Source: Anaeramoeba ignava BMAN (lineage: Eukaryota > Protista > Anaeramoebae). Taken from it: 64,000 bases of DNA. Numbering within the stretch: position 1 is the first letter of the stretch; each line of letters opens with the position of its first letter. The notes below the pieces were generated by a model. That model ran no database searches, was not told where the DNA came from, and was given only the letters and a program-made list of their open reading frames with translations. The stretch is taken from the NCBI GenBank assembly GCA_028826165.1, contig JAPDFW010000067.1, positions 1 to 64,000 on the forward strand. Reading direction: 5' to 3'. A program made the translations under genes and the position numbers. Positions 1,090-64,000 of this stretch are shown one piece after another.

Positions 1090-4000
1090 ATGTCAGAGAA
1101 TTTTTATTTAAAATTTTAGTTTTTGGACACTCTGGTGTTGGAAAACTTCAATTATTAACCGATACATTGTAAATTTCAAACAAAACAAAACAACAAAATT
1201 TCAAAACAAAACAAAACAAAACAAAAATTCAAAAATTAAAATATTTTTAAATTAAAAAGGATAATGAATTTGATTTTCACATGTTCCAACAATTGAGTTG
1301 AATTTGTAAATAATATTCAATTAATTTTATTATTTTTCTCTTGATCTTTTTATATCAAAAATTTTTCTTTCTTTTAAAAATTAAAAATTAAAAATAATAA
1401 AATTAAAATCAATAAAAAGCGATTTAAAGACTTAACAGTTGATGATCAGAAAATTCGGTTACAAATTGTAAGATAAATTAACTTTAAAATTCTTTTAGAT
1501 TTTTAAAATGAAGAAAAATATTTTTAATAAATAAATTAAAACAAAAATAGTGGGATTCTTGTGGTAAAAATTACCAAAAACAAAATATAAAACAATCATT
1601 TTTAAAAATGAAAAACACTTTAATTTTAGGTCAAAAAGTTTAAGGATGCCTTTTACTACAGCAATTTATAAGTATATTTTATTTTTCAATTATTTTTCAA
1701 TTTCATTTTTTCTTATAATTTATAATTTATAATTTATAATTTATAATTTAGAAATTCAAGTGCTTTTATTGTTGCTTATGATTTAACTGATTTAGATTCT
1801 CTTCAAGAACTTTTTATTGAAGAAATTGAAAATCATGCAAATGAAAATCCTTTAATTGTTATTGTTGGGAATAAAGCTGATCTTCCTTCAAATATTGAAA
1901 ATCCAGAAGAGAAAATAAAAGTAATTTATAAACAAAATTATAATTAAATTTATAAACAAATTTATAAACAAATTTATAAACAAATTTATAAACAAATTTA
2001 TAAACAAATTTATAAACAAATTTATAAACAAATTTATAAACAAATTTATAAACAAATTTATAAACAAATTTATAAACAAATTTATAAACAAATTTATAAA
2101 CAAATTTATATCAAAATTAATATCAAAATTAATATCAAAATTAATATCAAAATTAATATCAAAATTTATATCAAAATTTATATCAAAATTTATATCAAAA
2201 ATTTATATCAAAATTAATATCAAAATTATTATCAAAATTTATATCAAAATTTATATCAAAATTAATATCAAAATTAATATCAAAATTAATATCAAAATTT
2301 ATATTAAAATTTATATCAAAATTAATATCAAAATTTATATTAAAAAATTAATATCAAAATTTATATCAAAATTAATATTAAAATTTATATCAAAATTTAT
2401 ATCAAAAATTTATATCAAAATTTATATTAAAATTTATATCAAAATTAATATCAAAATTAATATCAAAATTAATATCAAAATTAATATTAAAATTAATATC
2501 AAAATTAATATTAAAATTAATATCAAAAATTTTATCAAAATTAATATTAAAATTAATATCAAAAATTAATATCAAAATTAATATCAAAAATTAATATCAA
2601 AATTAATATCAAAATTAATATCAAAATTTATATCAAAATTTATATTAAAAATTTATATCAAAATTTATATTAAAATTAATATCAAAATTTATATCAAAAT
2701 TAATATTAAAATTAATATCAAAATTTATATCAAAAATATTAAAATTAATATCAAAATTAATATTAAAATTAATATCAAATTAATATCAAAATTTATATTA
2801 AAATTAATATTAAAATTAATATTAAAAATTTATATCAAAATTAATATCAAAAATTAATATCAAAATTTATATCAAAATTTATATCAAAATTAATATTAAA
2901 ATTTATATCAAAATTTTATATTAAAATTTATATCAAAATTTATATTAAAATTAATATCAAAATTTATATCAAAATTAATATTAAAATTAATATCAAAAAT
3001 TTATATCAAAATTAATATTAAAATTAATATCAAAATTAATATTAAAATTAATATCAAATTAATATCAAAATTTATATTAAAATTAATATTAAAATTAATA
3101 TTAAAATTTATATCAAAAATTAATATCAAAATTAATATCAAAAATTAATATCAAAATTTATATCAAAATTTATATCAAAATTAATATTAAAAAATATCAA
3201 AATTTATATTAAAAATTAATATCAAAATTAATATCAAAATTAATATCAAAATTAATATCAAAATTTATATTAAAATTTATATCAAAATTTATATTAAAAA
3301 ATTAATATCAAAATTTATATCAAAATTAATATCAAAATTTATATCAAAATTAATATCAAAATTTAATATCAAAAATTAATATCAAAATTTAATATCAAAA
3401 TTAATATCAAAATTTAATATCAAAATTTATATCAAAATTTATATCAAAATTTATATCAAAAATTTATATCAAAATTTATATCAAAATTAATATCAAAATT
3501 AATATCAAAATTTATATTAAAATTAATATTAAAATTTATATCAAAAATTAATATTAAAATTTATATCAAAATTAATATCAAAATTTAATATCAAAAATTT
3601 AATATCAAAATTTATATCAAAATTTATATCAAAATTAATATTAAAATTTTATATTAAAATTTATATCAAAATTAATATCAAAATTTATATCAAAATTTAT
3701 ATCAAAATTAATATCAAAATTTATATCAAAATTAATATTAAAATTTATATTAAAATTTATATCAAAAATTAATATCAAAAATTTATATTAAAATTTATAT
3801 CAAAATTAATATCAAAATTAATATCAAAATTTATATCAAAATTAATATCAAAATTTATATCAAAATTAATATTAAAATTAATATCAAATTAATATCAAAA
3901 TTTATATTAAAATTAATATTAAAATTAATATTAAAATTTATATCAAAAATTAATATTAAAAATTTATATCAAAATTAATATCAAAATTTATATCAAAATT

Positions 4001-4735
4001 TATATTAAAATTAATATTAAAATTAATATTAAAATTAATATTAAAATTTATATTAAAATTTATATCAAAATTAATATCAAAATTAATATCAAAATTTATA
4101 TCAAAATTAATATCAAAATTTATATTAAAATTAATATTAAAATTAATATTAAAATTTATATTAAAATTAATATCAAAATTAATATCAAAATTTATATCAA
4201 AATTAATATTAAAATTAATATCAAATTAATATCAAAATTTATATTAAAAATTAATATTAAAATTAATATCAAAATTTATATTAAAAATTTATATTAAAAT
4301 TAATATCAAAATTAATATTAAAATTTATATCAAAATTAATATTAAAATTAATATCAAAATTAATATTAAAATTTATATCAAAATTAATATCAAAATTAAT
4401 ATTAAAATTAATATCAAAATTTATATTAAAATTAATATCAAAATTAATATCAAAATTATTATCAAAATTAATATCAAAATTAATATTAAAATTTATATCA
4501 AAAAGGAATTGACAAACGGAAAAATTATAAAACTTTTCGAACAAGTGCAAAAAGAAAGTACAAATGTAGATGAATTATTTTTCTATTTAATTAAAAAGAT
4601 GAAAAATGCACAAAAATGGCACAATCAATAAATGATCCAAACAAAAATGATTTTATAACAGATGACCAATTTAATAATTTAGGAGGATTTAGACCAAATC
4701 CAATTTGATGAAGATAAAGGCAAAAATGTTGTTAG
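1090..4735 (+). CDS. Rab family small GTPase, 7 exons, divergent
   Basis: Exons give FKILVFGHSGVGK (G1), TIGVEF (G2), WDSCGQ (G3; exon 1551..1563), IVGNKADL (G4), TSAK (G5, after intron 1921..4505) and a C-terminal KCC* prenylation motif. Several 1-nt indels must be assumed. Confidence 0.9.
1921..4505 (+). repeat. 2.6 kb Rab intron filled by a 12-nt tandem repeat (AAATTTATAAAC, then AAAATTWATATY)
   Basis: GT at 1921 and AG at 4504-4505. Splicing joins PEEKIK|ELTNGKIIKLF in frame between G4 and G5. Confidence 0.88.
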
Positions 4736-5160
4736 ATTTGATTCAAAAACAAAAATAAAAAGAAATCTTTTATTCCAATTTCCAAAAACGGAAAACTTTT
4801 TAAAACATTTAAATTTTTCTTTTTCTTTTCTTCTTTTTTCTTTTTCTTTTTCTTTTTTTTTTTATCCAATTAATTTTTACGTTTAAAAATTTGCATTTTC
4901 ATTCTGATTTTTGTATTGCTTTTTCTTTCTTAATCATCTTTCTCAAAAATTTAGAAAAACAAAAAAAAACATTTTAAATTAAAATTAATAAAAAATTTAA
5001 ATTAAAATTTGAATTAAAATTTGATTTTGTATTTATTTTGGAATTTAACTTTTAAATTTTTTTTTTTGGAAAGAAAAGAGAAAGAGAAAGAGAAGAAAAA
5101 AACATAGAAATCATATCAAGAAAAAAAAAGAAGAATTTTTTGAATAGAATGATGTATTCA

Positions 5161-5696
5161 TTAATGTCCAATTCTCTGAAATTCCCAATCACGAGTACAT
5201 AAAGGACAAACACTTCGAGTTTTCAACCAACGAGAAATGCAATGAAAATGGAAAGCATGATTGCAAATACCCCAAGCAACTGTGCATTCTTCTGTTGTTG
5301 TTGAATTTGGATTAGCTTGGCATTCAATACAAAGTTCCATTAATTGATTTCGACAAATAGCGCAAGTATCAACTTGCAAATCCCATTGCCATAAACTAAA
5401 AAAATTTATTTATTAAAATTTATTTATTTATTAAAATTAATTTATTATTAAATTAAATTGGAATTTTTTCATTGAAAATAAATTACCAGACAGCTAGTCA
5501 GTAAATAATTAAATAAAATTCAATTTTCCATTTATTTTTGTGCATTTATTTGTGTTTTTAAATTAAATGAGAACTTATTAATTTAAATTCATATTTTTAA
5601 TTTATTTTTACCATTCCATTTTTAACTTCAAGTTTTGCTTTTTCCTTTGATTTACCTCCACCTCTACCTTTTTCTTGGTTTTTCTGTATCAGCCAT
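5161..5696 (-). CDS. RBX1: RING-box protein 1 (cullin-RING ligase subunit)
   Basis: Exons 5696..5612, 5493..5487 and 5395..5161 give [22 protein letters not shown]...[23 protein letters not shown]. One homopolymer indel in exon 1. Confidence 0.95.
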
Positions 5697-5781
5697 TTTT
5701 GTTTATAAAAATTTTTAAAAATAAAGAAAAATGAAAAATGAAAAATTTTTATTAAAAAGAAAAAGAAAAAAAGAGATAAAT

Positions 5782-7701: not shown

Positions 7702-20027
<12,326 letters not shown>

Positions 20028-22029: not shown

Positions 22030-23330
22030 AGTTTTTAATAATTGTTAGTTTTTCTTTTCTATTTCTTCTTCTATTTCTATTTCTATTTCTTCTTCTATTT
22101 CATTTTCTTTTTCTTTTTCTTTTTCATTTTCATTTTTATTTTCATTTTCATCAAAAAAAAAATTTTCCGAAATTAAATTTGCTTTAATTGCAATCTAAAA
22201 TTAAAAATGATAAAAATAAAGAATAATTTGAATAAAAAGAAAATTATAAAGAAAATTACAACGCAAGCTTCTCTAATTTTTCCTTGTTGTTTAAGAAGAA
22301 AAATGTAATCAAGAAGAAATTCTTTTGCTTTTTGTTGAGTAATTCCCATGAATTCTGAAACTTTTGAAAGATCTAAAAATTAAAAAAGGGGAACAAAATT
22401 TTGAATTTTCAATTTTGAATTTTGAATTTTGAATTTGATATTGATATTGATATTGATATTGATATTGATATTGATATTGATATTGATATTGATTTGTGAA
22501 TTTGATTTTGAATTTGATTTTGAATTTGAATTATTTGTGAATTTGAATTTGAATTTGATTTTGAATTTGAATTTGAATTTGAATTTGATTTTGATTTTGA
22601 TTTGATTTTGATTTGAATTTGAATTTGAATTTGATTTTGAATTTAAATTTGAATTTGAATTTAATTTGATATTGATATTGATATTGATATTGATATTGAT
22701 TTTGATTTTGATTTGATTTTGATTTGAATTTGAATTTGATTTTGAATTTAAATTTGAATTTGAATTTGATTTTGAATTTTGATTTTAAATTTAATTTGAA
22801 TTTGATATTGATATTGATATTGATATTGATATTGATATTGATATTGATATTGATATTGATTTTTGATTTTGAATTTGATTTTGAATTTAAATTTGAATGT
22901 GAATTTGAATTTGAATTTGAATGTGAATTTGATATTGATTTTGAATTGAATTTGATTTGTGAATTTGAATTTAAATGTGAATTTGAATTTAATTTGTGAA
23001 TCTTCTACCATTCACTCCAAATTGAGATAAACCAACAAGAAAACGTTTAAATTCATCATAATCAGTTTGAGAAACAGAAAATAAAGAATCATTTGGATTT
23101 TCTTGATTTGATTTTTCAAGTAAATTTTGAAGTTTATTTCTCCATTTTCTTCCTTCTTCTAAATCAAAAATTTTAGCAAGATGAAGAAGAATTCTGTGTG
23201 TTTTTGAAAGATAAACAACTGCATCATCTATTCTTTCTTGTTGTTGATTTTGAAGTGAAGCCGTTAAATAAATTTCAGCTTCTTTTAATAAATTCTTGAA
23301 ATTTTGATTTGAATGAGTATAATAATCCAT
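22030..23330 (-). CDS. SSXT (SS18/GIF N-terminal)-like domain plus SANT/Myb-like domain protein
   Basis: LLKEAEIYLTASLQNQQQERIDDAVVYLSKTHRILLHLAKIFD resembles SSXT. DEFKRFLVGLSQFGVN|DLSKVSEFMG resembles SANT. The 3' end is approximate. Confidence 0.6.
22373..23008 (-). repeat. 636 bp intron filled with hexamer repeats (TCAAAT/TCAATA/TCAAAA on the coding strand)
   Basis: Donor G|GTAGAA at 23008 and acceptor TTTAG at 22373. The phase-1 join restores N-D-L-S-K-V. Confidence 0.8.
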
Positions 23331-34127: not shown

Positions 34128-34239
34128 ATGAAATTAATTTGGTTTATTAATAATTGAAGAAATATTTTCAACAAAAGAAAACAATTCTTTTCAATAAAAA
34201 AAAACTCAAAAAATTTTATTCCGATTTTGATCTTTTTTA

Positions 34240-37200: not shown

Positions 37201-38560
37201 AATAATAATTAATAAATTAATTTTTAAATTATTTTTATAATTAAATATTAAATTAAAATAGTATTAATTATTAAAATAAATTTATTAAAATATTTTATTA
37301 AATATTTAATCAAAAATTAATAATAATAATAAGTAAATAATAATAAAATAGTTAATAACAATTTTAAATTAATTTTATAATTAAATATTAAATCAAAATA
37401 ATATTAATTAATAAAATAAAATTATTTTAAATATTTTATTAAATATTTAATCAAAAATTAATAATAATAATAAATATTTAATAATAAATTATTAATAAAT
37501 TAATAATAAATTAATTTTATAATTAAATATTAAATTAAAATAATATTAATTATTTAAATCAATTTTATTTAAATATTTAATTAAATATTTAATCAAAAAT
37601 TAATAATAATAATAAGTAATTAATAATAAAATAATTAATAAATTAATTTTAAAAATTTTATAATTTATTAAATTAAAAATAATATTAATTATTAAAATAA
37701 AATTATTTAAATATTTTATTAAATATTTAATCAAAAATTAATAATAATAATAAATATTTAATAATAAAATAATTAATAAATTAATTTTAAAATAATTTTA
37801 TAATTAAATATTAAATTAAAATAATATTAATTAATAAAATAAAATTATTTAAAATATTTAATTAAATAATTAATCAAAAATTAATAATAATAATAAATAT
37901 TTAATAATAAATTATTAATAAATTAATAATAAATTAATTTTTATAATTAAATATTAAATTAAAATAATATTAATTATTTAAATAAATTCATTTGAATATT
38001 TTATTAAATATTTAATCAAAAATTAATAATAATAATAAATATTTAATAATAAAATTATTAATAAATTAATTTTAAATTAATTTTATAATTAAATATTAAA
38101 TCAAAAAAATAATATTAATTATTAAAATAAATTTATTAAAATATTTTATTAAATATTTAATCAAAAATTAATAATAATAATAAATATTTAATAATAAATT
38201 ATTTAATAAATTAATTTTAAATTATTTTTATAATTAAATATTAAATTAAAATAGTATTAATTAATAAAATAAAATTATTAAAATATTTAATTAAATATTT
38301 AATCAAAAATTAATAATAATAATAAATATTTAATAATAAAATAATTAATAAAATAATTTTAAATTATTTTATAATTAAATATTAAATTAAAATAATATTA
38401 ATTAATAAAATAAATTTATTTAAATATTTTATTAAATAATTAATTAAAAAAATTAATAATAATAATAAATATTTATTAATAAAATAATTAATAAAATAAT
38501 TTTAAATTAATTTTATAATTAAATATTAAATTAAAATAGTATTAATTATTAAAATAAAAA
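34240..38560. repeat. Intergenic satellite, ~140-145 bp unit, ~30 copies, nearly pure A/T
   Basis: The marker AATCAAAAATTAATAATAATAATAAATATTT recurs at ~35170, 35312, 35454, 35599 and 35746. Confidence 0.93.
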
Positions 38561-44177: not shown

Positions 44178-46006
44178 ATGTCTTTATCAAATATAAAATT
44201 CAAACCAAAGAAACCAATAAACGTTCTTCCAGTTATTACATCACGACTTTTCTCATCTAAACCTTATGTTTTTGTCAACAAAGACACAAAGGTTATTTGT
44301 CAAGGTTTAACAGGAAAACAAGTAAATATTATATTTAGGTTCTTTTTTAAACAATTATAGTTTTTAATAGAAATAAATTCAAAAAAAAACAAATCAAGAA
44401 AACCAGAATAAATCATTTCAATTTCAATTTTATAAATTAATTTTAATTTTGATTTTAATTATAATTTTGATTTTAATTTTAATTTTAATTTTAATTTTAA
44501 TTTTAATTTTAATTTGAATTATAATATTAATTTTAATTTTAATTTTAATTTTAATTTTAATTTTAATTTTATAAATGAATTTTAATTTCAATTTTAATTT
44601 TAATTTTAATTTCAATTTTAATTTTAATTTTAATTTTAATTTTATAAATGAATTTTAATTTTAATTTTAATTTTGATTTTAATTTTTATAAATTAATTTT
44701 AATTTTTAATATTAATTTTAATTTTAATTTTAATTTTAATTTTAATTTTAATTTTAATTTTGATTTTAATTTTGATTTTATAAATTAATTTTGATTTTAA
44801 TTTTAATTTTAATTTTTAATTTTAATTTTAATTTATAATTTTAATTTTAATTTTAATTTTATAAATGAATTTTAATTTTAATTTTTAATTTTAATTTTGA
44901 TTTTAATTTTAATATTAATTTTAATTATAATTTTGATTTTAATTTTAATTTTAATTTTAATTTTAATTTTAATTTTAATTTTAATTTTAATTTTAATTTT
45001 AATTTTAATTTTAATTTTAATTTTAATTTCAATTATAATTTAATTTTAATTTTAATTTTGATTTTAATTTTAATTTTAATTTTAATTTTAATTTTAATTT
45101 TATAAATGAATTTTAATTTCAATTTTAATTTTATTTTTTTAAATGAATTTTTAAATTAATTTAAAGGGAACATTCCACACAGATCAAGCCATCAAATATG
45201 GAACCAAAATGGTTGGAGGAGTATCACCAAACAAAGCCGGAACCTATCATTTAGGATTACCAGTTTTCTCAGACGTGAAAGAAGCAAAAGAAAAAACAGA
45301 TGCTGATGCAACAGTAATTTATGTCCCACCAAAATTTGCAGGAAAAGCATTAATCGATGCAATTGAAGCAGACATGGGATTAATTGTGTGCATTACAGAA
45401 CACATTCCACAACACGACATGATCAAAGTGAAGCGTAAGTTAAAAGAGCATCCAAACTCAAGATTGATTGGGCCAAATTGTCCCGGAATCATCAAACCAG
45501 GCGAATGCAAGATCGGAATCATGCCTGGACACATCCACAAGCCAGGAAAGATCGGAGTTGTATCACGATCAGGAACGTTGACATACGAAGCAGTTGCTCA
45601 AACAACAAAGACAGGACTTGGCCAAAGCACATGCGTTGGTATTGGTGGAGACCCATTTAACGGAACTAATTTTGTTGACGTTCTTTCTCGATTTTTGGAA
45701 GACCCTCAAACAGAGGGTATCATTATGATCGGTGAGATCGGTGGTAATGCCGAAGAAGATGCTGCTGAATTTCTTGCAAAACATAATACTGGAAAAAACA
45801 GAAAACCTGTCGTTAGTTTTATTGCTGGGTTAACTGCTCCCCCAAATAAACGTATGGGTCATGCTGGTGCTATTGTTTCTGGTGGAAAAGGTGGTGCTCA
45901 AGATAAGATTCGTGCTCTTGAATCTGTTGGTGTTAAAATCTCTAAATTCCCTAATGAGATTGGTTATGTTATGCATGATGTTATGAGAAGAGAAGGCAAA
46001 ATTTAA
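44178..46006 (+). CDS. SUCLG1: Succinyl-CoA synthetase alpha subunit with an N-terminal organelle-targeting peptide
   Basis: Exon 1 44178..44321 (..[12 protein letters not shown]) and exon 2 from 45167 (GTFH..GPNCPG..RMGHAG). Basic/Ser leader with RLFSS. Confidence 0.96.
44322..45166 (+). repeat. 845 bp SUCLG1 intron filled by (TTTTAA)n
   Basis: GTAAAT at 44322 and AAAG at 45166; the phase-0 join restores KQ|GTFH. Confidence 0.92.
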
Positions 46007-46399: not shown

Positions 46400-49300
46400 A
46401 TGGAAGAAAAACAAATAGAATTTTCAGGATTCCTATTTCAAAAAGCAGTTTTTAATCGATGGAATAAAAGATTTGTAAAATTAACGAAAAACGGGAAATT
46501 ATTAATTTTTAAAGATAAAAACGATACAAAAACAAAACATGAAATGGATGTAACGAATTATGAAGTAAAAACAGTTCCCGTTTCCAAATTTAAAAAGCAG
46601 AATGTATTTTTTCTTGGGATGAATATTTCAAAAGGAAAAAAGAAAAAAATATATTTTTCTTGTAGTAGTGAGAAGGAGAAGAATGATTGGCTTGAGATGA
46701 TAAACAATGTATTACATAAGAGGCAAGATAATTATCGACCGAGTTTATCTTTGAAATCTTTACAAAGTTTATCACCGAGTTCAATCAAACTGCAGTAATT
46801 TTAAATTTATAAATTAGTTTTAATTTTATAAATTATTTTGAATTATTTTTTTATTATAAATTAATTTTAATTTTATAAATTATTTTGAATTATTTTTTTA
46901 TTATAATAGTTATTCAAAACAACAGAATAATCAGAATAACCAAAGTACTACAGTTTCACCAACATCAACTTCTAAAACAGCTTTGGATTATACAGACGAT
47001 GAAAGTGAATTCGGTCAAGAAGTCCCAAATTTCATTGAAGATGAAATGGATTGGAATGAAACACTTCGTCTATTATTGCAACAATTACCTCCACAAAGAA
47101 CATATGAAAAATTTTATGAAATTCACGAAAATGTTCAACATGAAATTAGTATTTTGCAACTACTTGGAAACTTCCTTCATACAGCAGCTTATTGTGCACA
47201 AATTCTTATTGATGAATATCCACTCAAGAAATCTCAAAAAATTATCAAACCAATTTTTAATGAAAATTGCGATCCAAAACAAAAGAATTTTTTGATGGAA
47301 AAAGAACATTTTGAAGAAGATCAAATCCCAGGAATTCAATATGAAACATCCAATATGATTTTTAGATTCTATCACAGATATCCTGGAAAGCTAGAAAGCA
47401 CAGAGCTTTCTATGAAGATGGCTAATCATTTAGTCCAAAATGGAAAATTTATTCAGGAGGCAAATATAATCGGAGTTTATGTTCCTCTTCAATGCATCGT
47501 TGATTATAAAGGATTCCGTATTCATGTCTCAGCACAATTGCCTAATAATAAAAGAAGAGTTAAATTAGGTGAAGTGGTTAGTCCCAAAATTAAGAAGAAA
47601 TTGAAAGATTTATTGCAGAAATATTGTCTTAATTTGGATATGGAAAATGTTGATTTATTGGAAGTTCTTGAAATATCGGAAAATGAAATTTATTTATTAA
47701 ATGTGGAACAACTTTTCCCAACAGAAAAGTTTAATTACGAAGATCCGATAATCAATTTATTGAAAAAAGACTTAGAAAAGGAGGAATACAAGATGGTTTC
47801 AAGGATAAGACCCGAATTGTTAAGAAAAATAGGGAAAATAAGAATGAAAAATATTGATAATGAAAAAAATATTGATATTTCTCAATTTGCAAGAGATCAT
47901 TTATATTCTTATTCGTTGCCCAAATTCATTTCCAAAATGGATAATCTCGAGGTTATTGTTGTTGATTCACAAAAATTAAAAGATCAATTGCATTTGCATG
48001 GAATCAACATAAGGCATCTTGGTGTTCTCGCCAATTTAACAAAAATACCGCATGTAAGACAGCTTCTTGTGATTGAAATGATTGCTCGAGTTTGCAAGAA
48101 AAGCCTATACGAGCAATTACGAAAAACAAGCAAAAGAATCAAGAATATTGAATCAACAGAATTTGCGAATTTGGTTGCAAAAGAGGAAGATAAAGAAGTA
48201 ATAGAAAATGAAAATGGAAATGGAAATGAAAATGGAAATGAAATACAAAATGAAAATGAAATACAAAATGGAAATGAAAATGAAGAAATAAAGGAAAGAA
48301 AACCAGAATATGGATTCCAAACGCCGAAAAAAAGGATTTTAAAAAAGAAAACAACAGATATAGATTTGATAAATGATAGTATTGAGAAAAGTGGGCACAC
48401 AGAATTGGATTCGCCAAGAAACCACAGAGTTGTTGCTCGAATTAACGAGAGAATGGCCTCAATCATAATTGATTTCTTCAACCTTGTTCTTGGATCATCT
48501 GAAGAATGTGAAATGTATTGGGATGTAGTGCTAATTCCTGGAGTTTTGAAAAAATTTGGATTCAAAGCAGATTTCTCAATGATTCACAAACCAGCGCTGT
48601 TTCTAGCTCTACAATTCCACAGCGGTGTTGAATTTGTTGATACGGATGAATACGATTTCTCCAAGGAAAATCCTATTGAAAGGAATGATTTTGTTGCGAT
48701 TCATCCAAAACTAAAGATTTTTTACAACCAAAAAATGCTTTCATCAAAATTTGCGAAAAAATACGACAAATTTTCGTTGAATAACGAATATAACAACGCG
48801 ATCCAATCGCTCAATGTTGAGCTTGCGATCCAAAAATCGGTTTACGGGATTCGAACGATGCAAGTATCAAGAATATTAACGAAACTTTCGGCAATTTATT
48901 TCCAAAAAAAGGATCTTTCAAACTCGGTTCTTTGCGCAAATGCTGCACTTGGCGCTTCAAGGAAATTCTACGGCGATATTGCCGTCACTTATTTAGCTCT
49001 TATGAAGGCAAAATACCAGTCTGGAGACATGAAATCGGCGCTTGAATGTTTCAAATACTCGATGAATATTTTGCATTATCATTTATCTGAAAATCATCCG
49101 CTTTTGATTGATTCTTATAATGAAATTGCGCATCTTTATCAGCGTGATGGGAACATCCAATACGCGCTCAAATTCTTCACAAAGGCACTTGAGCTCTGCA
49201 AAAAAGTGCTTGGAGGAGGACATTGGAAAACTGCTTGGTGTTTCTTCAATGTTGGAAGATGCCATTCGCAATCCACAAATTTCCAGGAGGCGTTAGTCAT

Positions 49301-50054
49301 GATGGAAAACGGACTTGTTATCATAAGCTCTTTGTTTGGAGAGAAGCGTCTTGCTACCTCCATCTTTCATTTCTATGCGGCGGATATATTGATCAAGAAG
49401 GGAGATCTTTCAACGGCAAAAGAGCATAGTATGAAATCACTTGAGACACAAAAATATGTGAATCAATTGGTTCAAGAATCAAATCAATTGAGGACAAATG
49501 GAATTGTTTCTACTTTCAAGGACAGCTTGGAAAACCAGTCTTTGAAGAGAAACCAGGCGCAAATTGAGGATGTTTTTCGAGGATGTGAGAAGAAATACAA
49601 CGATTCCGAAATCAACGTGCTTCTTGTTAAGAATATTCTTCAAGTTGCTTATGTTCATGAGAACTTGAGCGAATTTTTGGAGGCGAATGATTTTTACCAA
49701 AGTGCTCTTGAGATTCTGAAGGATATGGAGGAGGATAATGTTTTGGAGCAAATTCAACACATCACGCGAACTGTATTGAATTTGCAGTTCAAAATGCTTT
49801 CTTTGGAAAAGCAATATATTCTTGAGAAGATTAAAGTTGACCAAATTCAAGGCAAGTCTCAAACATTGAAGTTTCCGATTACAAAAGAGTTATTTGAAAT
49901 GGTTGTTATTGAGCTTTTTGATCAAGATAGTTTGAAGGTTTATGTTGATTCTTTGTTTGATTGTGTTGTTCAAAATGGTGATAAAGAGGCTTTGAAGAAA
50001 TTGAAATCATTATATTTAATTTCGATTGGAGAGGATTTAACTATGTTTAATTAA
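46400..50054 (+). CDS. PH + CLU + TPR protein (clustered-mitochondria family)
   Basis: The PH exon 46400..46794 joins in frame via intron 46795..46909. VPLQCIVDYKGFRI, LHLHGINIRHLG, IEMIARVCK and kinesin-light-chain-type TPRs (HPLLIDSYNEIA). Confidence 0.85.
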
Positions 50055-50055
50055 A

Positions 50056-51662
50056 TTAATTTATAACAGAATTTAAAAAAGAATTTATAAAAGAATTTAA
50101 AAAAGAATTTATGAAAGAATTTATAACAGAATTTATAAAATAATTTATAAAATAATTTATAAAATAATTTATAAAAGAATTTATAAAATAAATTATAAAA
50201 GAATTTATAAAAGAAATTATAAAAGAATTTATAAAAGAAATTATAACAGAATTTATAACAGAATTTATAACAGAAATTATAACAGAAATTATAAAAGAAT
50301 TTAAAAAAGAAATTATAACAGAATTTATAACAGAATTTATAACAGAAATTATAACAGAATTTATAAAATAAATTATAACAGAATTTATAAAAGAAATTAT
50401 AAAATAATTTATAAAATAATTTATAACAGAATTTATAAAAAGAATTTATAAAAAGAATTTATAAAAGAATTTATAAAAGAATTTATAAAAGAATTTATAA
50501 AAGAATTTATAAAATAAATTATAAAAGAAATTATAAAAGAAATTATAAAATAATTTATAACAGAAATTATAACAGAATTTATAAAATAAATTATAAAAGA
50601 AATTATAAAAGAAATTATAAAATAATTTATAACAGAAATTATAACAGAATTTATAACAGAATTTATAACAGAAATTATAACAGAAATTATAACAGAATTT
50701 ATAAAAGAAATTATAAAATAATTTATAAAATAATTTATAACAGAATTTATAAAAGAATTTATAAAATAAATTATAAAAGAATTTATAAAATAATTTATAA
50801 AAGAAATTATAAAATAATTTATAAAATAATTTATAAAAGAAATTATAACAGAATTTATAAAAGAAATTATAAAAGAATTTAAAAAAGAATTTATAAAATA
50901 ATTTATAAAAGAAATTATAAAAGAATTTAAAAAGAATTTATAAAATAATTTATAAAAAGAATTTATAAAATAATTTATAAAAGAATTTATAAAAAGAATT
51001 TATAAAAGAATTTATAAAATAAATTATAAAAGAATTTATAAAAGAAATTATAAAAAGAATTTATAAAAGAAATTATAACAGAATTTATAACAGAATTTAT
51101 AACAGAAATTATAACAGAAATTATAAAAGAATTTAAAAAGAAATTATAACAGAATTTATAACAGAATTTATAACAGAAATTATAACAGAATTTATAAAAT
51201 AAATTATAACAGAATTTATAAAAGAAATTATAAAATAATTTATAAAATAATTTATAACAGAATTTATAAAAGAATTTATAAAAGAATTTATAAAAGAATT
51301 TATAAAAGAATTTATAAAAGAATTTATAAAAGAATTTATAAAAGAATTTATAACAGAAATTATAAAATAATTTATAAAATAAATTATAAAATAATTTATA
51401 AAATAAATTATGAAAGAATTTATAACAGAATTTATAACAGAATTTATAAAAGAATTTATAAAAGAATTTATAAAATAAATTATAAAAGAAATTATAAAAT
51501 AAATTAAAAAAGAAATTATGAAAGAATTTATAAAAGAATTTATAAAAGAATTTATAAAATAATTTATAAAATAATTTATAAAATAATTTATAAAATAATT
51601 TATAACAGAATTTATAAAAGAAATTATAAAAGAAATTATAACAGAATTTATAAAAGAATTTA
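50056..51662. repeat. Intergenic 12-nt tandem array (AATTTATAAAAG variants), 1.6 kb
   Basis: Starts right after the CLU stop and ends ~110 bp before the RPB9 ATG. Confidence 0.93.
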
Positions 51663-51773
51663 ATTGGTTTAATTTAATTAAATGAACAAAAAAAATTAAT
51701 TTGAAAAAAAAATTCATTTTTTCATTTTTTATTTTTTCATTTTTTATTTTTTTATTTTTTATTTTTCAATAAA

Positions 51774-52121
51774 ATGAGTGGAATTAAATTTTGTCCAGAA
51801 TGTAATAATATGCTTCGACCAGCAGAAGATCGAAAAGAAAAAAAACTAAGATATGTTTGTGATAATTGTCATCATTCAGAATATTCAGAAAATGCAAGAA
51901 TTTATGTAAATCACATTAAAACATATCAATTAGAAGAAACAGATCTTCATTTAGATTATGGAAGTGATCCAACTCTTCCAAGAACAGATAGGGAATGTGA
52001 TAGTTGTCAACAAACAGAAGCTGTTTTTTTTCAAGTTCCAAATCGTAAAGGAGAAGAAACAATGGAATTAGAATTTAGATGTGTTGGATGTGGAAAAAAA
52101 TTAATTCATGATCATAATTAG
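51774..52121 (+). CDS. POLR2I: RNA polymerase II subunit RPB9
   Basis: IKFCPECNNML..C..C, DPTLPRT..C..C..EAVFFQ and a second zinc ribbon. Confidence 0.93.
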   Translation: MSGIKFCPECNNMLRPAEDRKEKKLRYVCDNCHHSEYSENARIYVNHIKTYQLEETDLHLDYGSDPTLPRTDRECDSCQQTEAVFFQVPNRKGEETMELEFRCVGCGKKLIHDHN

Positions 52122-52715
52122 AATTACAAAAATGAAATACAAAAATGAAATACAAAAATGAAATATAAAATTAAATACAAAATTAATTATAAAATTAATT
52201 ATAAAATTAAATATAAAATTAATGATAAAATTAAATTCAAAAATGAAATATAAAATTAAATATAAAATTAAATATAAAATTAATGATAAAATTAAATATA
52301 AAATTAAATATAAAATTAAATATAAAATTAATTATAAAATTATTTATAAAATTAATTATAAAATTAAATATAAAATTAAATACAAAATTAAATACAAAAT
52401 TAAATATAAAATTAAATATAAAATTAAATATAAAATTAAATATAAAATTAAATATAAAATTAAATATAAAATTATTGATAAAATTATTTACAAAATTAAA
52501 TATAAAATTAAATATAAAATTAAATATAAAATTATTGATAAAATTATTTATAATATTAAATATAAAATTATTTATAAAATTAAATATAAAATTAATTATA
52601 AAATTATTGATAAAATTAAATACAAAATTAATTACAAAATTATTTACAAAATTAATGATAAAATTATTGATAAAATTAAAGATAAAATTAAAGATAAAAT
52701 TATTTACAAAATTCT
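52122..52715. repeat. Intergenic 12-nt tandem array (AAAATTAAATAT variants)
   Basis: Begins at the RPB9 stop and lies between convergent genes. Confidence 0.9.
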
Positions 52716-52907: not shown

Positions 52908-55900
52908 CTATTTTTTTCTTTCAAATTTTTCAGAAGGATCAAAAACAGTAAATTTTGTAGGAAGAATTTGGAAATATTTCTGGATATATTTTTGGAATCT
53001 ATTTTTATAGTCTTCTGGAGAAATAACAGTTGGGGTTTTGCCTTGACCACCACCAACAAGCCCAGTACGCTTGACCCAAGATTCAAGTTGCTTGTCCCAA
53101 GTGTACTGCCTCAAATAATCAATAATACCAACGATGATCTGATGATTTTTGTCGTCGATACCAACAAGCAGGGAATAATCCATGACTTTCATAAGATAAA
53201 GAAAATACGAGTCTTTATAAATGGCGTTCATGATTTCGGATTTTGATTTTTCATCACAAAAAAAGGGAGTTCCGTAAATAAAGTCCTTGAGATTCTCGTC
53301 CTGGAGAACAAACTGGGTCTGTGTGGGGTTTTCGAGATGAAGAGAGTGCTTGTTTGAAGGGATGTTTTCTGGGAGGATCTCTGTATTTGCAGGCTGTGTG
53401 GGAGTATTTTCGTTGAGAATAGGACGGAGCTTGGAGGATGATTTGCGTTGCTCTGAAAGAACTGGGGAGTTGATTGTAGTGGGAGTGGGAGAGATGTTGT
53501 GCGAGGAAGTTTTTTTGGAGGAGAGTATATGCGCATGAGGAACATCAACATAGCGGCTTCGTGTTGATCCTTTGAGATCGAATATTTTGGAGATTTCGCG
53601 GCCATAAAATAAATTTTCCATTAAAACAAGAGCTTGACTTGAAACACGATTGGTTTGAGTTGTGATTGTGATGCGGAATAAACCGAGGATTTTGATGAGC
53701 GCCGAGGGGTGGTTGTGGAATAAGTTGTTTGAGATATAACGGAAGTAGAAAGGAGCGCATAAATTGAAGGATTCGAATTCTGTTTTGGATATTTTTTTGA
53801 TGATGAAGTGGTCATCAAAGGTTTTGGCAAAAGTGGAGCCTGATTTGCCTCCCTTGCTTTCCCAGCGTCTGCATCTTGAGATTGACTGGAAAAAGAGGGT
53901 GTCAGAGGCGTAGGGATCGATACAACAGAAACGACGCAGAGCCTCGAATTTCTTGGGATAGAAAAGTGTGCATTCAATTTTGCTGTGGATCTCAGGATAC
54001 GCAATTTGGATGGTGATTGGCTTTGCGTTTTTGCTTTGGAGAATGCTTTCGAGAACGCGGGGATCGTTGGGCTCGCGTAGATTGATCTGGGGATCGCCGA
54101 GCGCGTGGAGCTTCTTGATGTAATCTTTGGAGTTGAGTGAGTGAGCAATGATTGAGCTGGGCTCGTCTTCGTAGACGCAAACAACGCGGCGGAGAATGCC
54201 TGTTGGAACAAAGACCCATGAACGTGATTCCCGTTGGAAATGATCTGCGAGGTTTTTGAAATGCGCGATGTGATGATGGATGTGATCCTTCTTTCCTGTT
54301 TTCTCCGTTGTCTCAACCCCGTCAATCCCGAATAACCGCCGTGATTGTCCCGATTCGTTGCCGAAACCCTCGAGAGTTTGTGCTCCTCCAGAAAGGTTTC
54401 TTTCGTGGGAGAAATCGCCTCCGGTTGGCGGTAAAAGTACCCATGTATCTCGCAGATCTTCCGCACGCATCCCACTCTGCGTTTGGTGTGTGATGCTCTG
54501 TAAATCTCGTGTGACAAGTCGCAATGCGCCGTCTTTGTCTGTGTTGTGCTCGTGAAGATTCACTATGTCCTCGATCAAATTGAGAAGTTGATTTGGAATG
54601 CTTTCGGTTTTTTTCTTGCTGCTGGGTTTCTTGTCTGTTCCCGCAATAACCCTGCCAATCTCCCTCAACCGCTCGTCAAGCTGGGTCAGTCTTGCGCTGT
54701 GATCGAGGATTTTTGTGAACAAGTTCTGTTTTACTCTGTTCAAACCGAAAATATCGAGCGGTTTTTTTTCGAGATCCAAAATTTCATCCTTGATCTCTTT
54801 TGCATCTTCATCTGTTTTTGCGCGCTGATTCCCAGCCTCGCTCAGAAACGTCTCGAGCATATTCGTAATTTTCTTGTCCTGCGAGCGCTGTTGGTGCTGT
54901 GTTTGCTGGTGGGTTTTTACAGATGCGCAGAGTTGATCAAGATGAACGCGGATATGTTCGAATGCGTTGTTGATTATTCTCTGCAGAAGATTCATCATCT
55001 GTCGCAGGAAGGAGGTGTCTTTTGATTCATGATATTGAACCGTCTTTGGGAGTTGCTCAATCTTCATTGCCTCGATGCGACTGTATTCGAAACAGGCAAT
55101 CATTTTTTTGTGCGCGAAAAAACGCGTTGAATTTGCATGAAGCGCATGCATACACAGCGGCTTGAGCGCGTGTTCTGCGCGGGCAACGCCGTTTTGTTGG
55201 TAGAATATAATCTCGAGAAATTTTGCGAAGGAGAGTAGTTGTGCCTTTCGTCCTAATCGTTTGGGTCGTGTTGTTTGGTGGCATACTCCGCAACTTGTCC
55301 ATGTTTGGATCCCTTCGTCGCTTCCGTCGATCGTTGTCTGTGCGCTCTGGAGCTGGATGGAGATCGCCACGCATCCTTGATTGTGGAGATACGCAAGAAA
55401 TGCCATCCCATGTTTGCTCTTGTCTTCTGTGTTTTTTGTTGTGCTTTCCCGATGAATTATGTTCAGTTTTTTTTCTTGATCTTTTGAGAAGCATTCGTTC
55501 ATCAGGAATTCCCCTAGTGTTGTATCCCCTTTTCGGTATAGTTTTAGGGATCGCATTTTGAGCTCTGTTTCCTTGAAATGATATTTCCGAGAGCGTGCTT
55601 CGACAACAACAAGATCCAGAAGAGAGTATACGTGTTGTTTGCGATATTTGGGTGTTTTGAATTTTTTGCGTGTTTCTATTTCGAGTATTTGTGATTGGTA
55701 GTGTTGTTTGGATGTTTTTGGATGTTTTTGTTGATTCTTATCTTCTTTTATATCTTTGTTTTCATATATATTTTCATTTTCTTTTATTTCTTGATTTTGA
55801 TTTATATCATTTATATTTTGATTTATATTTTCTTTAATATTTTCATTTATATTTTGATTTTCATTTATATTTGTATTTTCATTTATATTTGTATTTTCAT

Positions 55901-58900
55901 TTATATTTTGATTTTCATTAATATTTTCATTTTCTTTAATATCTTCTTTAATATCTTCATTTGTATTTTCTTTAATATTTTGATTTTCATTTATATTTTG
56001 ATTTTCATTAATATCTTCATTTATATTTTCATTTGTATTTTGATTTTCTTTAATTTCATTAATATCTTCTTTGATATCTTCATTTATATTTTGATTTTCT
56101 TTAATATTTTCATTTATATTTTCATTTATATTTTGATTTTCTTTAATATTTTCATTTATATTTTCATTTTCTTTAATATTTTCTTTAATATTTTCATTTG
56201 TATTTTCTTTAATATTTTGATTTTCATTTATATTTTGATTTTCTTTAATATCTTCTTTAATATCTTCTTTAATATCATTTATATTTTGATTTTCTTTAAT
56301 ATCTTCATTTGTATTTTCTTTAATATCTTCATTTGGATTTTCTTTAATATTTTGATCTTCATTTGTATTTTCATTTTCATTTTCTTTAATATTTTGATCT
56401 TCATTTATATTTTCATTTGGATTTTCTTTAATATCTTCATTTGGATCTTCATTTATTTCTTGTTTTTCTTTGATACTCTGCTCTTCTTGCTCCCGTTGCT
56501 CAAGTAACTCCTTCTCCTTTTCAGCAATCAACTCTTGCTCTCGATTCTCAATCTCAATCTCATTCACCTCCAAATCACTTTCTTGCTTCATATCTTGATC
56601 AAGAGCATCATCCTTATCAGCAACATTATCATTCTGCTCATCTTCATCTCCAAAATCATTGCCAAACTCAATCTCACTATCTGTTTCAGCACGATCGCTC
56701 TCCTCAAGAGGTTTTTGGAACCGAGGAGTATGAGACACAAAATCCATATGAGGAGATATGGAAAGAAGATTTCCAGGGGATTCAATGAGAACAGACATGC
56801 CGCTATTTGCAGGGTTGCTGCGGATGAAAATGGCGCTCATATCCAGCAGCGCCTTTGTCTCGAGCCGCGAATTCCACAGCCCGAATATTGCGAGTTTAAG
56901 CAGCTTTTTGAGCTGAGACAATCGCATAAAAGAATCTCCGCGAAGAAGAATTGTGACGAAACTTGTCATCGCATTTTTGGTTGTGATTGCGATAATAGAT
57001 TTTTTATTGGGCGCTTGCGGATCCACCCAATCGGAATCAAACGAGTATTCTCGAAAAGAGAAGTTGGGATTACTGATGGAGTTTTTTGTACTGAGATTTG
57101 TTATGTTGTTTTCATTGGCTGTTTCATGATCATCTAAATCATAAATGGTTGCGCTGAAATTCTCGCAAACACCCAGAACAGGTGCCTTTGCATGGCGGTT
57201 GTATTGACTGCAAATATCGCCGCCAGTCATTTGCGCAATTTGCTGCATTGCCTCCTTCTTGACGTTGCAGACAACAGTGATTTTTTTCTCAAGAAGTATT
57301 TCCTGAGCGAATCGAGACACAACTCCAGTCACAAACAGAACATGAGGATCCAGACTACCGACACGATCCAAAAATGGTCTTAGCAACTTCTGCTCGTTCT
57401 GCAGCACATGCTCCAGAGAGTATATACGCATCTGGTTCTGCTCCTTTTTCTTCTTCCGTTTTGCGTGGAATTGTGAGTTGTAAAAATCAATGTTTCCATC
57501 TACAAATAATATCTTCGCATCCTCAAATACCGTCTGCATGCTCCGATGAAGCACGTTTCGTGAGAATGCAATCCCTTTCACAAAGCTTGATGCTTCGGGA
57601 TCTTTTCCTGCGATTTTCTTGATCTTGATGCATTGCAAAATGTTCAATGGCATCGCGTATTTTGTTTCGTCTCCGCCTCCTCCCTTCATGCTATCATCTC
57701 CGCTCTTCCTTCCGCTTATCTTCATCCCCATTTTCTCACGCTCTTCTTTGTCTACAAGGAAATTTTCTAGTGAATCGCATGTGCATTCCGCTAATTTCAT
57801 GATTTTGTGCGTCCATTTTTCAGGATCAAAGTTTTGTTCTTTTAATGCTTGTCGGATCACTGCAACTAGATGTGCATATTCCACATCGTGTAGATGTTTT
57901 TTGTGCATTTTTTCCAGAATTGTTTTTTGTTCTTTTTCTTTAGTTTTGTTTTGATTTTTGATTTTATTTTGATTTTGATTTTGAATTTGATTTCGATTTT
58001 GATTTAGATTTTGATTTTGATTTTGATTTTGATTTTCATTTGAATTTTCATTTTGATTTTGATTTAGATTTTGTTTTAAATTTGAATTTTCATTTTGATT
58101 TTCATTTGAATTTTCATTTTGATTTTCATTTTCTTTTGAATTTTCATTTTGATTTTCATTTTCATTTTCATTTTCATTTTCATTTTCATTTTCATTTGAA
58201 TTTTCATTTTGATTTTCATTTGAATTTTCATTCTCGGAATCGTTTGGCATTTTTATTAAACCTTTTGAGGAAAATACATTTAAATAAATATTAAATAAAT
58301 ATTAATTAAATAATTAAATAAATATCAAATAAATATCAAATAAATATATTTTTGAAAATAAATATTAAATAAATATATTTTTGAAAATAAATATTAATTC
58401 AATATATTTTTGAAAATAAATATCATTTCATATATACATGAATTCCTTTCAATCTCAATAGCAAATGACGTAGGTGAGAAATACTGATACCGATCAGTCA
58501 CAATAGTCTCAATTCCACTAAAATCCTCTTGTCCAACACCAACAACATCAGAATTCTTCACATTATCTCCCCACCTCCGATTCCATGCATTCTTACTAAG
58601 AGCACCAAAACAATCCTTGTCTCGTGAAACCCCTTTCTGCTTTCTCGTTTCTTCAATAACTTCCTGCTCAATACCTTCATCAACAACCTTCTGCCCAACT
58701 AAAGATACACTTGATTGCGAATCACTTATCTGCATCCTTCCTGCCTCGAGTTGTGGCTCCATGTTCTTGAAAATATCTGCACATTCATTACACACAAGAA
58801 GCTTTGAATGGAACCCTAAATTCTCGCCTGAAACAAGTTTCATGCATTGCTGACAGAAACTCAAGTTGCAAATCTGACATTTATCCGGCACAAACTTTTG

Positions 58901-60802: not shown

Positions 60803-61120
60803 TTTTTTTTTTGATTTAAAAACAAACTTCTATTATCTATATTTAAACTATTAATTTAAAAAATATAAATAAATTATATTAATAAAAAAGAAAAAAAAAT
60901 TTTTTTTAAATTATTAAATTAAATTATTAATTACTTTTCGTTTTTAATACGAAAATGAAAAATGAAAAAAATTTTTTTTTGTTAATTGATCTTTTTTATT
61001 TAAATCTCAACAGAAAAAAAAATTTTTTTTTTTTTTATTTTTTTTTATTTAACTTTTTACTTTAAATAAATTAATTTTTAATAAGAGATTATCAAAGAAA
61101 TATTAATAGAATTAAATTTT

Positions 61121-61137
61121 ATTGGTCAATGACGTCA
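61121..61137. promoter_or_regulatory. CCAAT box plus CRE palindrome in the divergent EEF1A/FARSB promoter
   Basis: ATTGG at 61121 and TGACGTCA at 61130-61137 stand out in very AT-rich DNA. Confidence 0.5.
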
Positions 61138-61568
61138 GTTAACTATTATTTCTTTTAAAAATTTATTATTAATTTATTATTTAAATTAATTTTAATTTAA
61201 TTTTTTAATCTCCCCCTAATTTAAATTTAAATTTTAATTTTATTTATAAAATAAAATAAAATAAGATCATTTAATTTTAAATTTAAAAAAACAACAAATA
61301 AACATTTTATTACTAATTTTTTTATAATTATTATTAATTTTTTTTCTATTTTTACTAATTTTTTTTTAAATTATTTTTAATTATGAAAAATTAATAATTT
61401 TTTCGTCATTTAAAAAAATCAAAACAAAATTTTTTTTTCATTTTTTCATTTTTTTTCATTTTTTCCCTAAATTTTCAAATTCAAATTCTAATTCAAATTC
61501 AAAATTATTTCAAATAAATTTTATAAATTTAATTATAAATTTAAAATTAAAATTTAATTAAAAATAAA

Positions 61569-61682
61569 ATGCCAGTTGTTTCTGTTACTCGAGATTCACT
61601 TTTTAAAGAACTTGGAAAAACTTTTACTCAAGAAGAATTTGCAGATTTTTGTTTTGAGTTTGGAATAGAACTTGATGATGTT
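61569..61682 (+). CDS. FARSB: Phenylalanyl-tRNA synthetase beta subunit, exon 1
   Basis: [38 protein letters not shown] followed by a GTAAAT donor. Missed by the ORF track. Confidence 0.92.
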
Positions 61683-64000
61683 GTAAATACAATTAGAGAG
61701 AGATTTTAATTATTAATATAAATAATAATATATTTAATATAAATAATATAAATAATATAAATAATATAAATAATATATTTAATATAAATAATATATTTAA
61801 TATAAATAATATAAATAATATAAATAATATAAATTTAATATAAATAAAATAATATATTTAAATAATATATTTAATATAAATAATATATTTAATATATTTA
61901 ATATAAAATAAATATATTTAATATAAAATAATATTTAATATAAATAATATATTTAATATAAATAATATATTTAATAGTATATTTAATATAAAATAAATAT
62001 TTAAATATAAAAATATTTAATATAATATAAAATAAATATAAATATTTAAATAAAAAAATAATATTTAATATAAAATAAAATATTTAATATAAAAATAAAA
62101 TATTTTAATATAAATAAATATATATTTAATATAAATAATATATAATAATATATATATTTATTTAATAATAAATAATATAAAATATTAATATAAATTTATT
62201 ATGTATTTTAATACAAAAATAATATATTTAATATAATTAATATATTTAATATAAAATATTTATAATTAAAATATTTAATACAAAATAACATATAATATAT
62301 TTTAATATAAATAAATAAAATAATATAAAAAATAATAATATATTTAAACATATAAACTAATATATTTTAATATGGAAAAAATAATATAAATAATATAAAT
62401 AAAATTTAAATAATTAATATAAATATTATATTTTAATATAAATAAATAATATAATATATTTAATATAAATAAATTAATATAAATAAACAATGTATAAAAT
62501 AATATAAATAAATAAAATAATATTAATATTTAATAAAATAACATAAAATAATATATTTAATATAAAATAATATATTTAATATAAATAATATATTTATTAT
62601 AAATAATATTTATAAATAATATAAATAATATATTTAATATAAATAATATATTTAATATAAAATATACAATTTAAATATAAATAATATATTTAATATAAAA
62701 ATATATAATTTAAATAATATAAATATAAATATATTTAAATATAAATAAATATTTAATACAAAAAAATAATATATTTAATATAAATAATATATTTAATATA
62801 AATAAAAAAATACATTTTAATATAAATAAATTTAAAATAATATATTTAATATATTTTACAAACAAATATCAAACAATATAACAAATATATTTTATTATAA
62901 AAAATACAAATATATAAAAATACATAAATAATACAAATAATATAAAATAATGTTTTGAATATATAATAACATGTTTATTATAAAAATACAAAATATGCAA
63001 AATATAAATATAATATTTAATAATGTATAATTACAACAAAATAAACAATATATTAATATAAACAATATAAAATAATATATTTTTAATATATTTAATATAA
63101 AATAATATATTTATTTATATATTTAAATACAAAATAAATAAATATACAATATAAAACAATAACATTTTAATATAAAATAATATATTTAATACAAACAAAT
63201 AAATAATATATTTAATATAAATAATATAAAATTATATTTTTAATATAAATAATATAAATAATTTAATATATATTTAATATAAATAATATATTTAATATAA
63301 TTAACATATTAAAATAATATAAATAAATAAATTGTTTAATATAAATAATATATTTTAATACAAATAATATAAATAATATATACATTTAATATAAATAACA
63401 TATTTTAATACATTCAAAACAAATAAAATATTTAATATAAATAATATATTTAATATATTTTAAATTGATAATAAAAAATAACATAAACAATAAATATAAA
63501 ATATTAATAATATAAATATAATACATTTATATATAATATAACAAATAAATATTTTTAATACAAATAATATATTTATATAAATAATATATTTAATATAAAT
63601 AATATGTTTAAATAAATAAATATAAATATTTAATATAAATAATATAATCATAAATAATATAAACAATAAAATATATGTTTAATATAAATAATATATTTAA
63701 TATGTTTAATAAAAAATAATATAAATATATATCCAATAAAATAATTTATAATATAAACATATAAATATGTTTAATATAAATAATATAAATTAATATATAT
63801 TTAATATATTTAATATAAATAATATATTTTATATATAAACAAATATATTTTAAAGCAAATAATAATATATTTAATATAAAATAAATAATATAAATAATAT
63901 AATTAATATGTTTATAAATAATATAAAATAATATAAACAATACATAACAAAACAATATATTGCCATGTATATTTAATAAAAACAATATTATAAATAATAT
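61683..64000 (+). repeat. FARSB intron 1 (>2.3 kb), degenerate AT repeat (AATATAAATAATATATTT-like)
   Basis: Donor at 61683; no coding continuation recognised before the window end. Confidence 0.8.

Follow-up and report, generated by a model that had tools for sequence, protein, structure and literature searches.

Animal intronic microsatellite and variable-number tandem repeat expansions, such as that of GAA in FXN intron 1, are examples of slippage-type, transposon-free growth. Introner elements alter intron content genome-wide: their copies, which are dispersed and nearly identical, generate new introns and supply the ends of these themselves. The genomes of Dictyostelium discoideum and Plasmodium falciparum combine extreme A/T content with coding repeats rich in asparagine and glutamine (N/Q-rich) and with abundant non-coding simple repeats. 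The Drosophila Y fertility genes kl-3 and kl-5 have gigantic introns that contain satellite DNA (PMC6508621). Here we analyze a stretch of 64,000 nucleotides (nt), hereafter the window, corresponding to positions 1-64000 of contig JAPDFW010000067.1 (C68) of the nuclear genome of the protist Anaeramoeba ignava BMAN, in which some introns, of a class that ordinarily measures ~76 nt, are enlarged to 0.7-3 kb by A/T-rich tandem repeats. For some of the genes involved, these are real spliceosomal introns. Taking all the evidence together, it is probable that tandem repeats grow throughout this genome and are tolerated in introns, and that the window is a faulty mirror copy in which array lengths are unreliable.

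For the introns of strain BMAN, the A. ignava genome paper (PMC11550330, Table S3A and Supplementary Note 1) gives a modal length of 76 nt, an average of 300 nt, a maximum of 4168 nt, and a GC content of 8%; the published annotation made use of RNA sequencing (RNA-seq) hints. Short introns are typical of the window as well, as a preliminary description of this DNA had stated, with the five short introns of a Rab gene measuring ~60-130 nt (read in the mirror copy of the window, arm B). The G+C content of the window averages ~20% and drops to 1-6% within the arrays. Searches were run against the genome assembly of 42,843,398 bp in 147 contigs, and one of them, using SUCLG1 DNA as query, revealed the whole window mirrored at C68:~90.7-159.9 kb about a center at ~76.9 kb. 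We refer to the window side of the contig (C68:1-72,681) as arm A and to the mirror side (C68:82,275-159,881) as arm B.

Array-filled introns and the evidence for splicing

Six introns had been singled out earlier as expanded by tandem arrays, and Tandem Repeats Finder (TRF) located all six arrays where they had been placed: at 1926-4503 in the Rab gene (12/36-mer), 8438-9838 in a gene coding for a BEACH protein (17-mer), 22398-22995 in a gene originally labeled SSXT (6/12-mer), 31074-31862 in KRR1 (12-mer), 44415-45138 in SUCLG1 (6-mer), and from 61716 onward in FARSB. All are head-to-tail tandem arrays, that is, one unit in many copies with high copy-to-copy identity; the copy numbers from TRF were 66 for a 36-mer (Rab, 88% identity), 83 for a 17-mer, 100 and 119 for two 6-mer arrays, and 66 for a 12-mer (91% identity). 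The intervals that contain them run from GT to AG on the gene strand (with the 3' end of the FARSB interval outside the window), and their borders are identical in arm B. The arrays were also described as free of transposon hallmarks, and we found no long open reading frames in them (open fraction, 0.05-0.34), units of only 6-36 nt, and arrays that abut the splice sites, although no transposon library was searched. We rejected the idea that they might be chains of tandem introns with 3-nt exons, since the arrays lack the G required for internal splice sites.

For SUCLG1, removal of the array is proven at the transcript level. Exon 1 (44178-44321, + strand, 48 amino acids [aa]) and exon 2 (45167-46006, +, 279 aa plus the stop codon) are separated by a phase 0 intron that holds the hexamer array (44322-45166, +). 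The public protein KAJ5074965.1 (327 aa) corresponds exactly to the two exons joined and has the same sequence as a TransDecoder open reading frame in EukProt, a92010_693.p1 ("ORF type:complete"), the naming of which suggests that this EukProt set is a transcriptome. The absence of in-frame TAA and TAG in SUCLG1 exon 2 points to the standard genetic code, and a ciliate code was rejected on this ground.

In the Rab gene, exon 6 (1747-1920, +) carries the NKxD motif and ends in ...EEKIK. It is followed by intron 6 (1921-4505, +, phase 0), in which a 12-mer array gives way to a higher-order 36-mer array and not a single internal G is present, and by the last exon (4506-4630, +), which is frameshifted in the window and has its intact form, ending in KKCC, in arm B. 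The public gene model KAJ5074937.1 connects ...EEKIK to ELTNGK over 1921-4505. In profile searches, which were run exon by exon, the upstream exon matched positions 70-118 of the Pfam Ras profile and the downstream exon positions 132-161, and the 13 unaligned residues close the gap exactly. Splicing of this intron is therefore modeled in the RNA-seq-guided public annotation and agrees with the continuity of the Ras profile.

A similar argument applies to FARSB. The 38 aa of its exon 1 (61569-61682, +) match positions 1-38 of Pfam PhetRS_B1 (E value of 2e-14), and the 22 residues of exon 2, located after the array, match positions 47-64. This order of the profile across the array suggests that intron 1 (61683-64000 and on to C68:64951, +, phase 0) is spliced. 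FARSB also has a second array-filled intron at C68:~65,830-67,980 (2.2 kb, 12-mer, phase 2), whose sense strand has 19 G but a single GT/AG. The description of one inflated intron per gene does not hold for this gene, given this second 2.2-kb intron at C68:~65.8-68.0 kb.

KRR1 differs in that the array lies at the very beginning of the gene. A homolog search with its exon 2 matched KRR1 proteins of other organisms, and this main exon begins 22 residues before the first KH domain with no usable ATG. The sole start codon accompanied by a donor is found in a 19-nt exon (31039-31057, +) that encodes MELEQE plus one base, upstream of a phase 1 intron made of a pure A/T 12-mer array (31058-31870, +). 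Because the only exon bearing an ATG sits upstream of the array, the latter would have to be spliced out.

The two remaining cases are putative. In the BEACH gene, whose identity is backed by DUF4704 and PH_BEACH matches, the candidate intron (8424-9845, +, phase 0, 17-mer array) is located in the N-terminal part and is proposed from its GT..AG borders and open flanks. A Pfam search of the N-terminal exons gave no match, and the junction is in frame within an unconserved N-terminal part. A homolog search with the 2022-aa BEACH frame returned none at an E value of ≤1e-30, probably because low-complexity words swamped the search. The label SSXT had to be dropped, as Pfam gave no SSXT match for the gene at 22992-23330 (- strand); a protein atlas points its product weakly (0.86) to MIT-domain clusters, and we refer to it as the MIT-like gene. 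Its putative intron (22373-23008, -) holds an array whose sense strand is rich in C and poor in G. Pfam gave no match for the exon that follows the array, and the unspliced frame would end 6 codons further on. The array could instead be 3' flank. As to the claim that splicing restores conserved reading frames, it stands for SUCLG1, Rab, and FARSB; KRR1, whose first exon has 19 nt, is in frame, and for the BEACH and MIT-like genes the frame is kept but the junction falls in no conserved domain.

Probable repeat growth across the genome and sense-strand composition

Tandem arrays are by no means restricted to introns. In the 83.6 kb of arm B surveyed with TRF (score of ≥200), they make up 28.5 kb (34%), of which, by our own classification, 13.4 kb (~47%) is intronic, 8.2 kb (~29%) intergenic, and 6.7 kb (~24%) in open reading frames. 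Similar arrays appeared in all seven other loci sampled and represented 35% of their 154 kb, in a small sample that was partly picked via repeat matches. Within the BEACH protein, a coding 9-mer array (10242-11335, +; C68:148,252-149,332 in arm B) encodes ~360 N/Q-rich residues; it is open in arm B and seems non-coding in the window only through indel errors. A hexamer array of AATGAA (13301-13883, +) is likewise coding, within the 2022-aa BEACH frame. Among intergenic arrays, a 143-nt satellite with ~99% A/T extends over 4.3 kb (34237-38558; 4.4 kb in arm B). One 12-mer array (50058-51662) lies between the stop codon of a gene for a CLU/eIF3-p135-like TPR protein (46860-50051, +) and the start codon of RPB9 (51771-52118, +), with AG in nearly every unit, and another (52129-52713) lies between the convergent 3' ends of RPB9 and a gene for a Fab1/PIKfyve-like kinase (52911-58301, -) with Cpn60_TCP1 and PIP5K domains. 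Thus, from the proposed transposon-independent expansion of introns, the swelling of introns by simple arrays is maintained, but not its intron-specific character, since arrays are also intergenic and coding. Elsewhere in the window, RBX1 was found at 5164-5409 (-), and Rfam and tRNA scans of the 64 kb gave no matches.

Nor are the units always private to one intron. We searched the whole genome for the Rab 12-mer, the one unit covered by this analysis, as two consecutive units (24 nt) with ≤1 mismatch, and found 322 matching places, with arrays on C61, C64, C76, C82, and C93 among six other contigs. At C93:375,158-377,341, the same 12-mer (sense strand, ATTAATATCAAA) is repeated over 2.2 kb between exons of a myosin-I-like gene, where it probably lies in an intron. 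The arrays on C61, C64, C76, and C82 are smaller. The preliminary description had the units differing between introns, which is mostly the case, but the Rab 12-mer is shared with the myosin gene and other contigs. It also had them locally born; local birth fits the micro-arrays in the short Rab introns, while the Rab unit is not private to its locus. The 12-nt period is the commonest among non-coding arrays, with about a dozen of the ~30 found in C68:77-174 kb and the sampled loci.

In the scenario that we favor, short A/T-rich motifs (6-36 nt, very often 12) would grow to arrays 0.3-4.4 kb long in any sequence under little constraint, that is, in introns, intergenic DNA, and low-complexity coding tracts, in the last case with units of 6 and 9 nt that keep the frame. 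This growth would be driven by replication slippage and unequal exchange, and the higher-order periods (a 36-mer equivalent to three 12-mers and a 143/434-mer) point to the exchange of multi-unit blocks. In introns, the array would come to replace nearly everything from the 5' GT to the last bases before the 3' AG; the arrays observed begin ~3-5 nt past the GT and stop a few nt short of the AG. The first Rab unit is the donor-adjacent sequence minus the GT, and the short introns of this gene already bear micro-arrays (runs of 5-7-nt units), which suggests that growth starts from within introns. The units that survive would have few G or none in the sense orientation, mostly outside GT and AG, and would therefore create no competing splice sites. 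Their low G could be due to selection or to a transcription-linked bias that the arrays inherit from ordinary introns, which also have more C than G.

Introns almost devoid of G had been reported for the whole set. This is correct for the Rab, KRR1, MIT-like, BEACH, and second FARSB introns, with zero G in the Rab array intron, but not for SUCLG1 and FARSB intron 1, where the sense-strand counts of G and C are 15/17 and 33/31, respectively, and where internal GT/AG are present. Over the seven introns (13.7 kb), the sense strand has 41 GT plus AG and the antisense strand 119, although in repeated units such counts are not independent observations. Where G does occur, it may still be kept out of these dinucleotides. 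Composition would predict 11 GT/AG in the BEACH intron, which has 12 G but none of these dinucleotides, and 18 in the second FARSB intron, which has 19 G and only 1. An intron on C76 has 28 sense-strand G, none within GT or AG. In comparison, intergenic arrays contain up to 85 AG. These numbers suggest that intronic arrays are tolerated when their units lack G, or else GT and AG, on the sense strand, by selection or by a mutation bias linked to transcription. As a separate observation, G in non-coding arrays is almost always within TGA (TCA on the other strand).

Whether selection is needed at all is a fair question. It is possible, and we keep it as a tentative alternative, that the poverty in G merely reflects an asymmetry of transcription-coupled mutation or repair amplified by repeat growth, with no selection against cryptic splice sites. 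Such an asymmetry would fit the excess of C over G on the sense strand of 4/5 short Rab introns, the GC skew that tracks gene direction across much of the window, and the internal GT/AG tolerated in SUCLG1 and FARSB intron 1. Against it stand the BEACH, second FARSB, and C76 introns, which avoid GT and AG completely or almost so despite having G, and the many such dinucleotides in intergenic arrays. At the other extreme, we find very doubtful a strict "splice-silent satellite" rule by which any short unit would expand to kilobases in an intron as long as it is without sense-strand GT or AG, the sole donor pairing with the sole acceptor, and by which lengths would shift 2-3-fold per ~1% divergence. 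If it were true, intron length would be a fast-evolving and possibly selectable variable, for example, through transcription delay or nucleosome spacing.

The expansion had also been considered an active process of introns. A currently active, intron-specific expansion in which each array is born privately in its own intron seems unlikely. The position of the arrays only 3-5 nt after the donor, a first unit that resembles the sequence next to the splice site, the micro-arrays of the short Rab introns, and units that mostly differ between introns are what it would produce, but comparable arrays in intergenic DNA and open reading frames are not, and the Rab unit recurs in the myosin gene, probably in an intron, and elsewhere. 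Furthermore, neighboring copies within arrays match at only 82-93%, and hence are not obviously recent. The best indication of rapid change comes from an inverted repeat near the center of C68 (described below), where the two copies of a coding 9-mer array, AATTAAATG, measure 203 and 497 nt with flanks ~1% apart, while the adjoining hexamer array measures 344 versus 338 nt. From this one 9-mer case, array length can change fast. For the introns themselves, present activity is not demonstrated, because the sole whole-locus length comparison is that between two arms that most likely represent one locus assembled twice, and their length differences are most likely assembly noise.

A mirror-image arm at the start of the contig

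Arm A, which includes the whole window (1-64000), is error-rich and most likely a spurious copy. Its differences from arm B comprise 619 indels and 216 substitutions. Single-base runs account for 81% of the indels, and indel density peaks (14-47 per kb) over the 24 kb at the outer end of the window. The BEACH frame is an unbroken 2022 aa in arm B only, and in the window it is broken up over all three frames; the P-loop of the Rab protein and its C-terminal KKCC are also intact only in arm B. A different pattern was found in the innermost part of the mirrored region, at 72,682-76,690 and 77,166-81,444, where two copies of ~4 kb each flank an asymmetric spacer of 455 nt and carry a head-to-head pair of Cys-rich-stalk genes. 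These copies differ by ~1.2% substitutions, evenly spread, with almost no small indels. Judging from this pattern, which is the opposite of that in the outer arms, the inner 4-kb inverted repeat is real.

Another contig, C29, opens with a noisy copy of the spacer and the left repeat (C29:143-5324) and diverges into unrelated sequence exactly at the outer edge of the left repeat (72,682), so that C29 and C68 probably abut at the inner repeat. The homopolymer-indel differences, the frames broken in arm A, and C29 as a rival flank make it very likely that arm A (C68:1-72,681) is a spurious copy, generated when the assembler turned back at the real inner repeat, and that the true left flank is C29. 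The published method, in which R9 nanopore data, some of them from the LSK308 kit, went through ABruijn, Racon, Nanopolish, and Pilon, agrees with a turn-back mis-assembly. The outer end of arm A would have remained unpolished, since reads reaching the unique sequence past 159.9 kb would all map to arm B. Hairpin contig ends produced by inverted-repeat mis-assembly look much the same: a mirror duplicate at the end of a contig that pivots on a real inverted repeat, one arm poorly polished, and an alternative flank on another contig. The A. ignava case differs from them by a stretch of 830 nt that was skipped at the join.

The 77-kb inverted duplication could in principle be real, with the window as a genuine second copy and the 2-3-fold differences in array length as biological variation. 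The central spacer is asymmetric, which a simple template-complement chimeric read would not yield, the public assembly contains and annotates both arms, and errors are present in both. Nevertheless, outside the inner 4 kb substitutions between the arms fall to 0.1-0.4% while indels rise to 20-47 per kb, a balance opposite to that of natural divergence. In addition, sequence quality over the 24 kb at the outer end of arm A is near that of raw reads, and C29 provides an alternative left flank for the same center. All this makes a genuine duplication quite unlikely.

With arm A as a spurious copy, the intron lengths reported earlier are correct for the window but come from an error-rich sequence, and those of arm B are different. 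The Rab and BEACH introns are nearly equal in both (2585 nt in the window versus 2591 nt in arm B and 1422 versus 1420 nt, respectively). SUCLG1 has 845 versus 768 nt, FARSB intron 1 has 3269 versus 2908 nt, the MIT-like gene has 636 versus 1008 nt, and KRR1 has 813 versus 2789 nt. If the arms are one locus assembled twice, the arrays are real, yet their lengths in the assembly can be off by up to 3.4-fold, and the comparison between arms is uninformative about biological instability.

Several observations weigh against the combined interpretation of genome-wide repeat growth and a faulty mirror copy. Transcript-level support is available at 1/6 junctions (SUCLG1). In the SUCLG1 intron and FARSB intron 1, internal GT/AG are about as frequent as expected, and the probable intron on C93 carries 28. 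The 830-nt stretch, which is next to the right repeat and absent from arm A, is not predicted by a simple turn-back. Finally, arm B has its own errors, for example, the SUCLG1 model KAJ5074992.1 is without 21 residues, and for this reason arm B can be considered right only region by region. A last possibility, that nanopore sequencing or the assembler created the arrays or a large part of their length, is extremely improbable, because even if R9 basecalling struggles with pure A/T low-complexity sequence and the two assemblies of probably one locus differ in length by up to 3.4-fold, each array recurs in the two arms with its unit unchanged, similar arrays appeared in 7/7 other sampled loci, the RNA-seq-guided annotation has a mean intron far above its mode and a longest one of over 4 kb, and the SUCLG1 transcript skips exactly the array-bearing interval.

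In practical terms, the apparent mirror-image mis-assembly of ~72 kb at the start of C68 in a public contig is more urgent than the repeat biology. Accession numbers indicate that ~27 genes are annotated twice (e.g., SUCLG1 as KAJ5074965.1 and KAJ5074992.1), and public models truncated by frameshifts occur, such as the Rab model KAJ5074937.1 with 106 aa. Gene counts, "gene family expansions," and repeat-length statistics derived from such regions would be inflated or wrong, and windows taken from C68:1-72.7 kb will duplicate findings from 82-160 kb.

Comparison with known systems

The published intron statistics of A. ignava are those expected from a minority of introns filled with A/T arrays. 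A spliceosome adapted to introns of ~76 nt would thus also cope with kilobase introns that are almost without internal sequence information, which makes A. ignava a natural test bed for splice-site pairing.

Like the FXN-type expansions, the growth of these introns appears to be of the slippage type and transposon-free. However, FXN-type loci are rare, often pathogenic, and polymorphic, whereas the A. ignava arrays are routine and account for about one-third of the sampled DNA. The extreme A/T content, the N/Q-rich coding repeats, and the abundance of non-coding simple repeats are shared with D. discoideum and P. falciparum, for which, to our knowledge, kilobase arrays of 12-36-nt units filling whole introns are not a described hallmark. 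Unlike what happens with introners, in A. ignava pre-existing introns at conserved positions would grow from within, by means of short and mostly locus-specific units. We know of no special splicing factors for the array introns of A. ignava.

The Drosophila kl-3 and kl-5 genes resemble this case in having protein-coding introns enlarged by simple tandem repeats that are transcribed and spliced across, but their introns are megabase-sized, occur in a small number of testis genes located in heterochromatin, and depend on dedicated RNA-binding factors (PMC6508621). In A. ignava, the enlarged introns measure 0.7-3 kb and are found in many housekeeping genes of a 43-Mb protist genome, alongside introns of 76 nt. 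Tandem repeats go unmentioned in the searched parts of the A. ignava genome paper (PMC11550330). The growth of introns by tandem repeats was already known from other organisms, and the A. ignava case is of the same kind, with a kilobase scale and many housekeeping genes of a compact protist genome involved.

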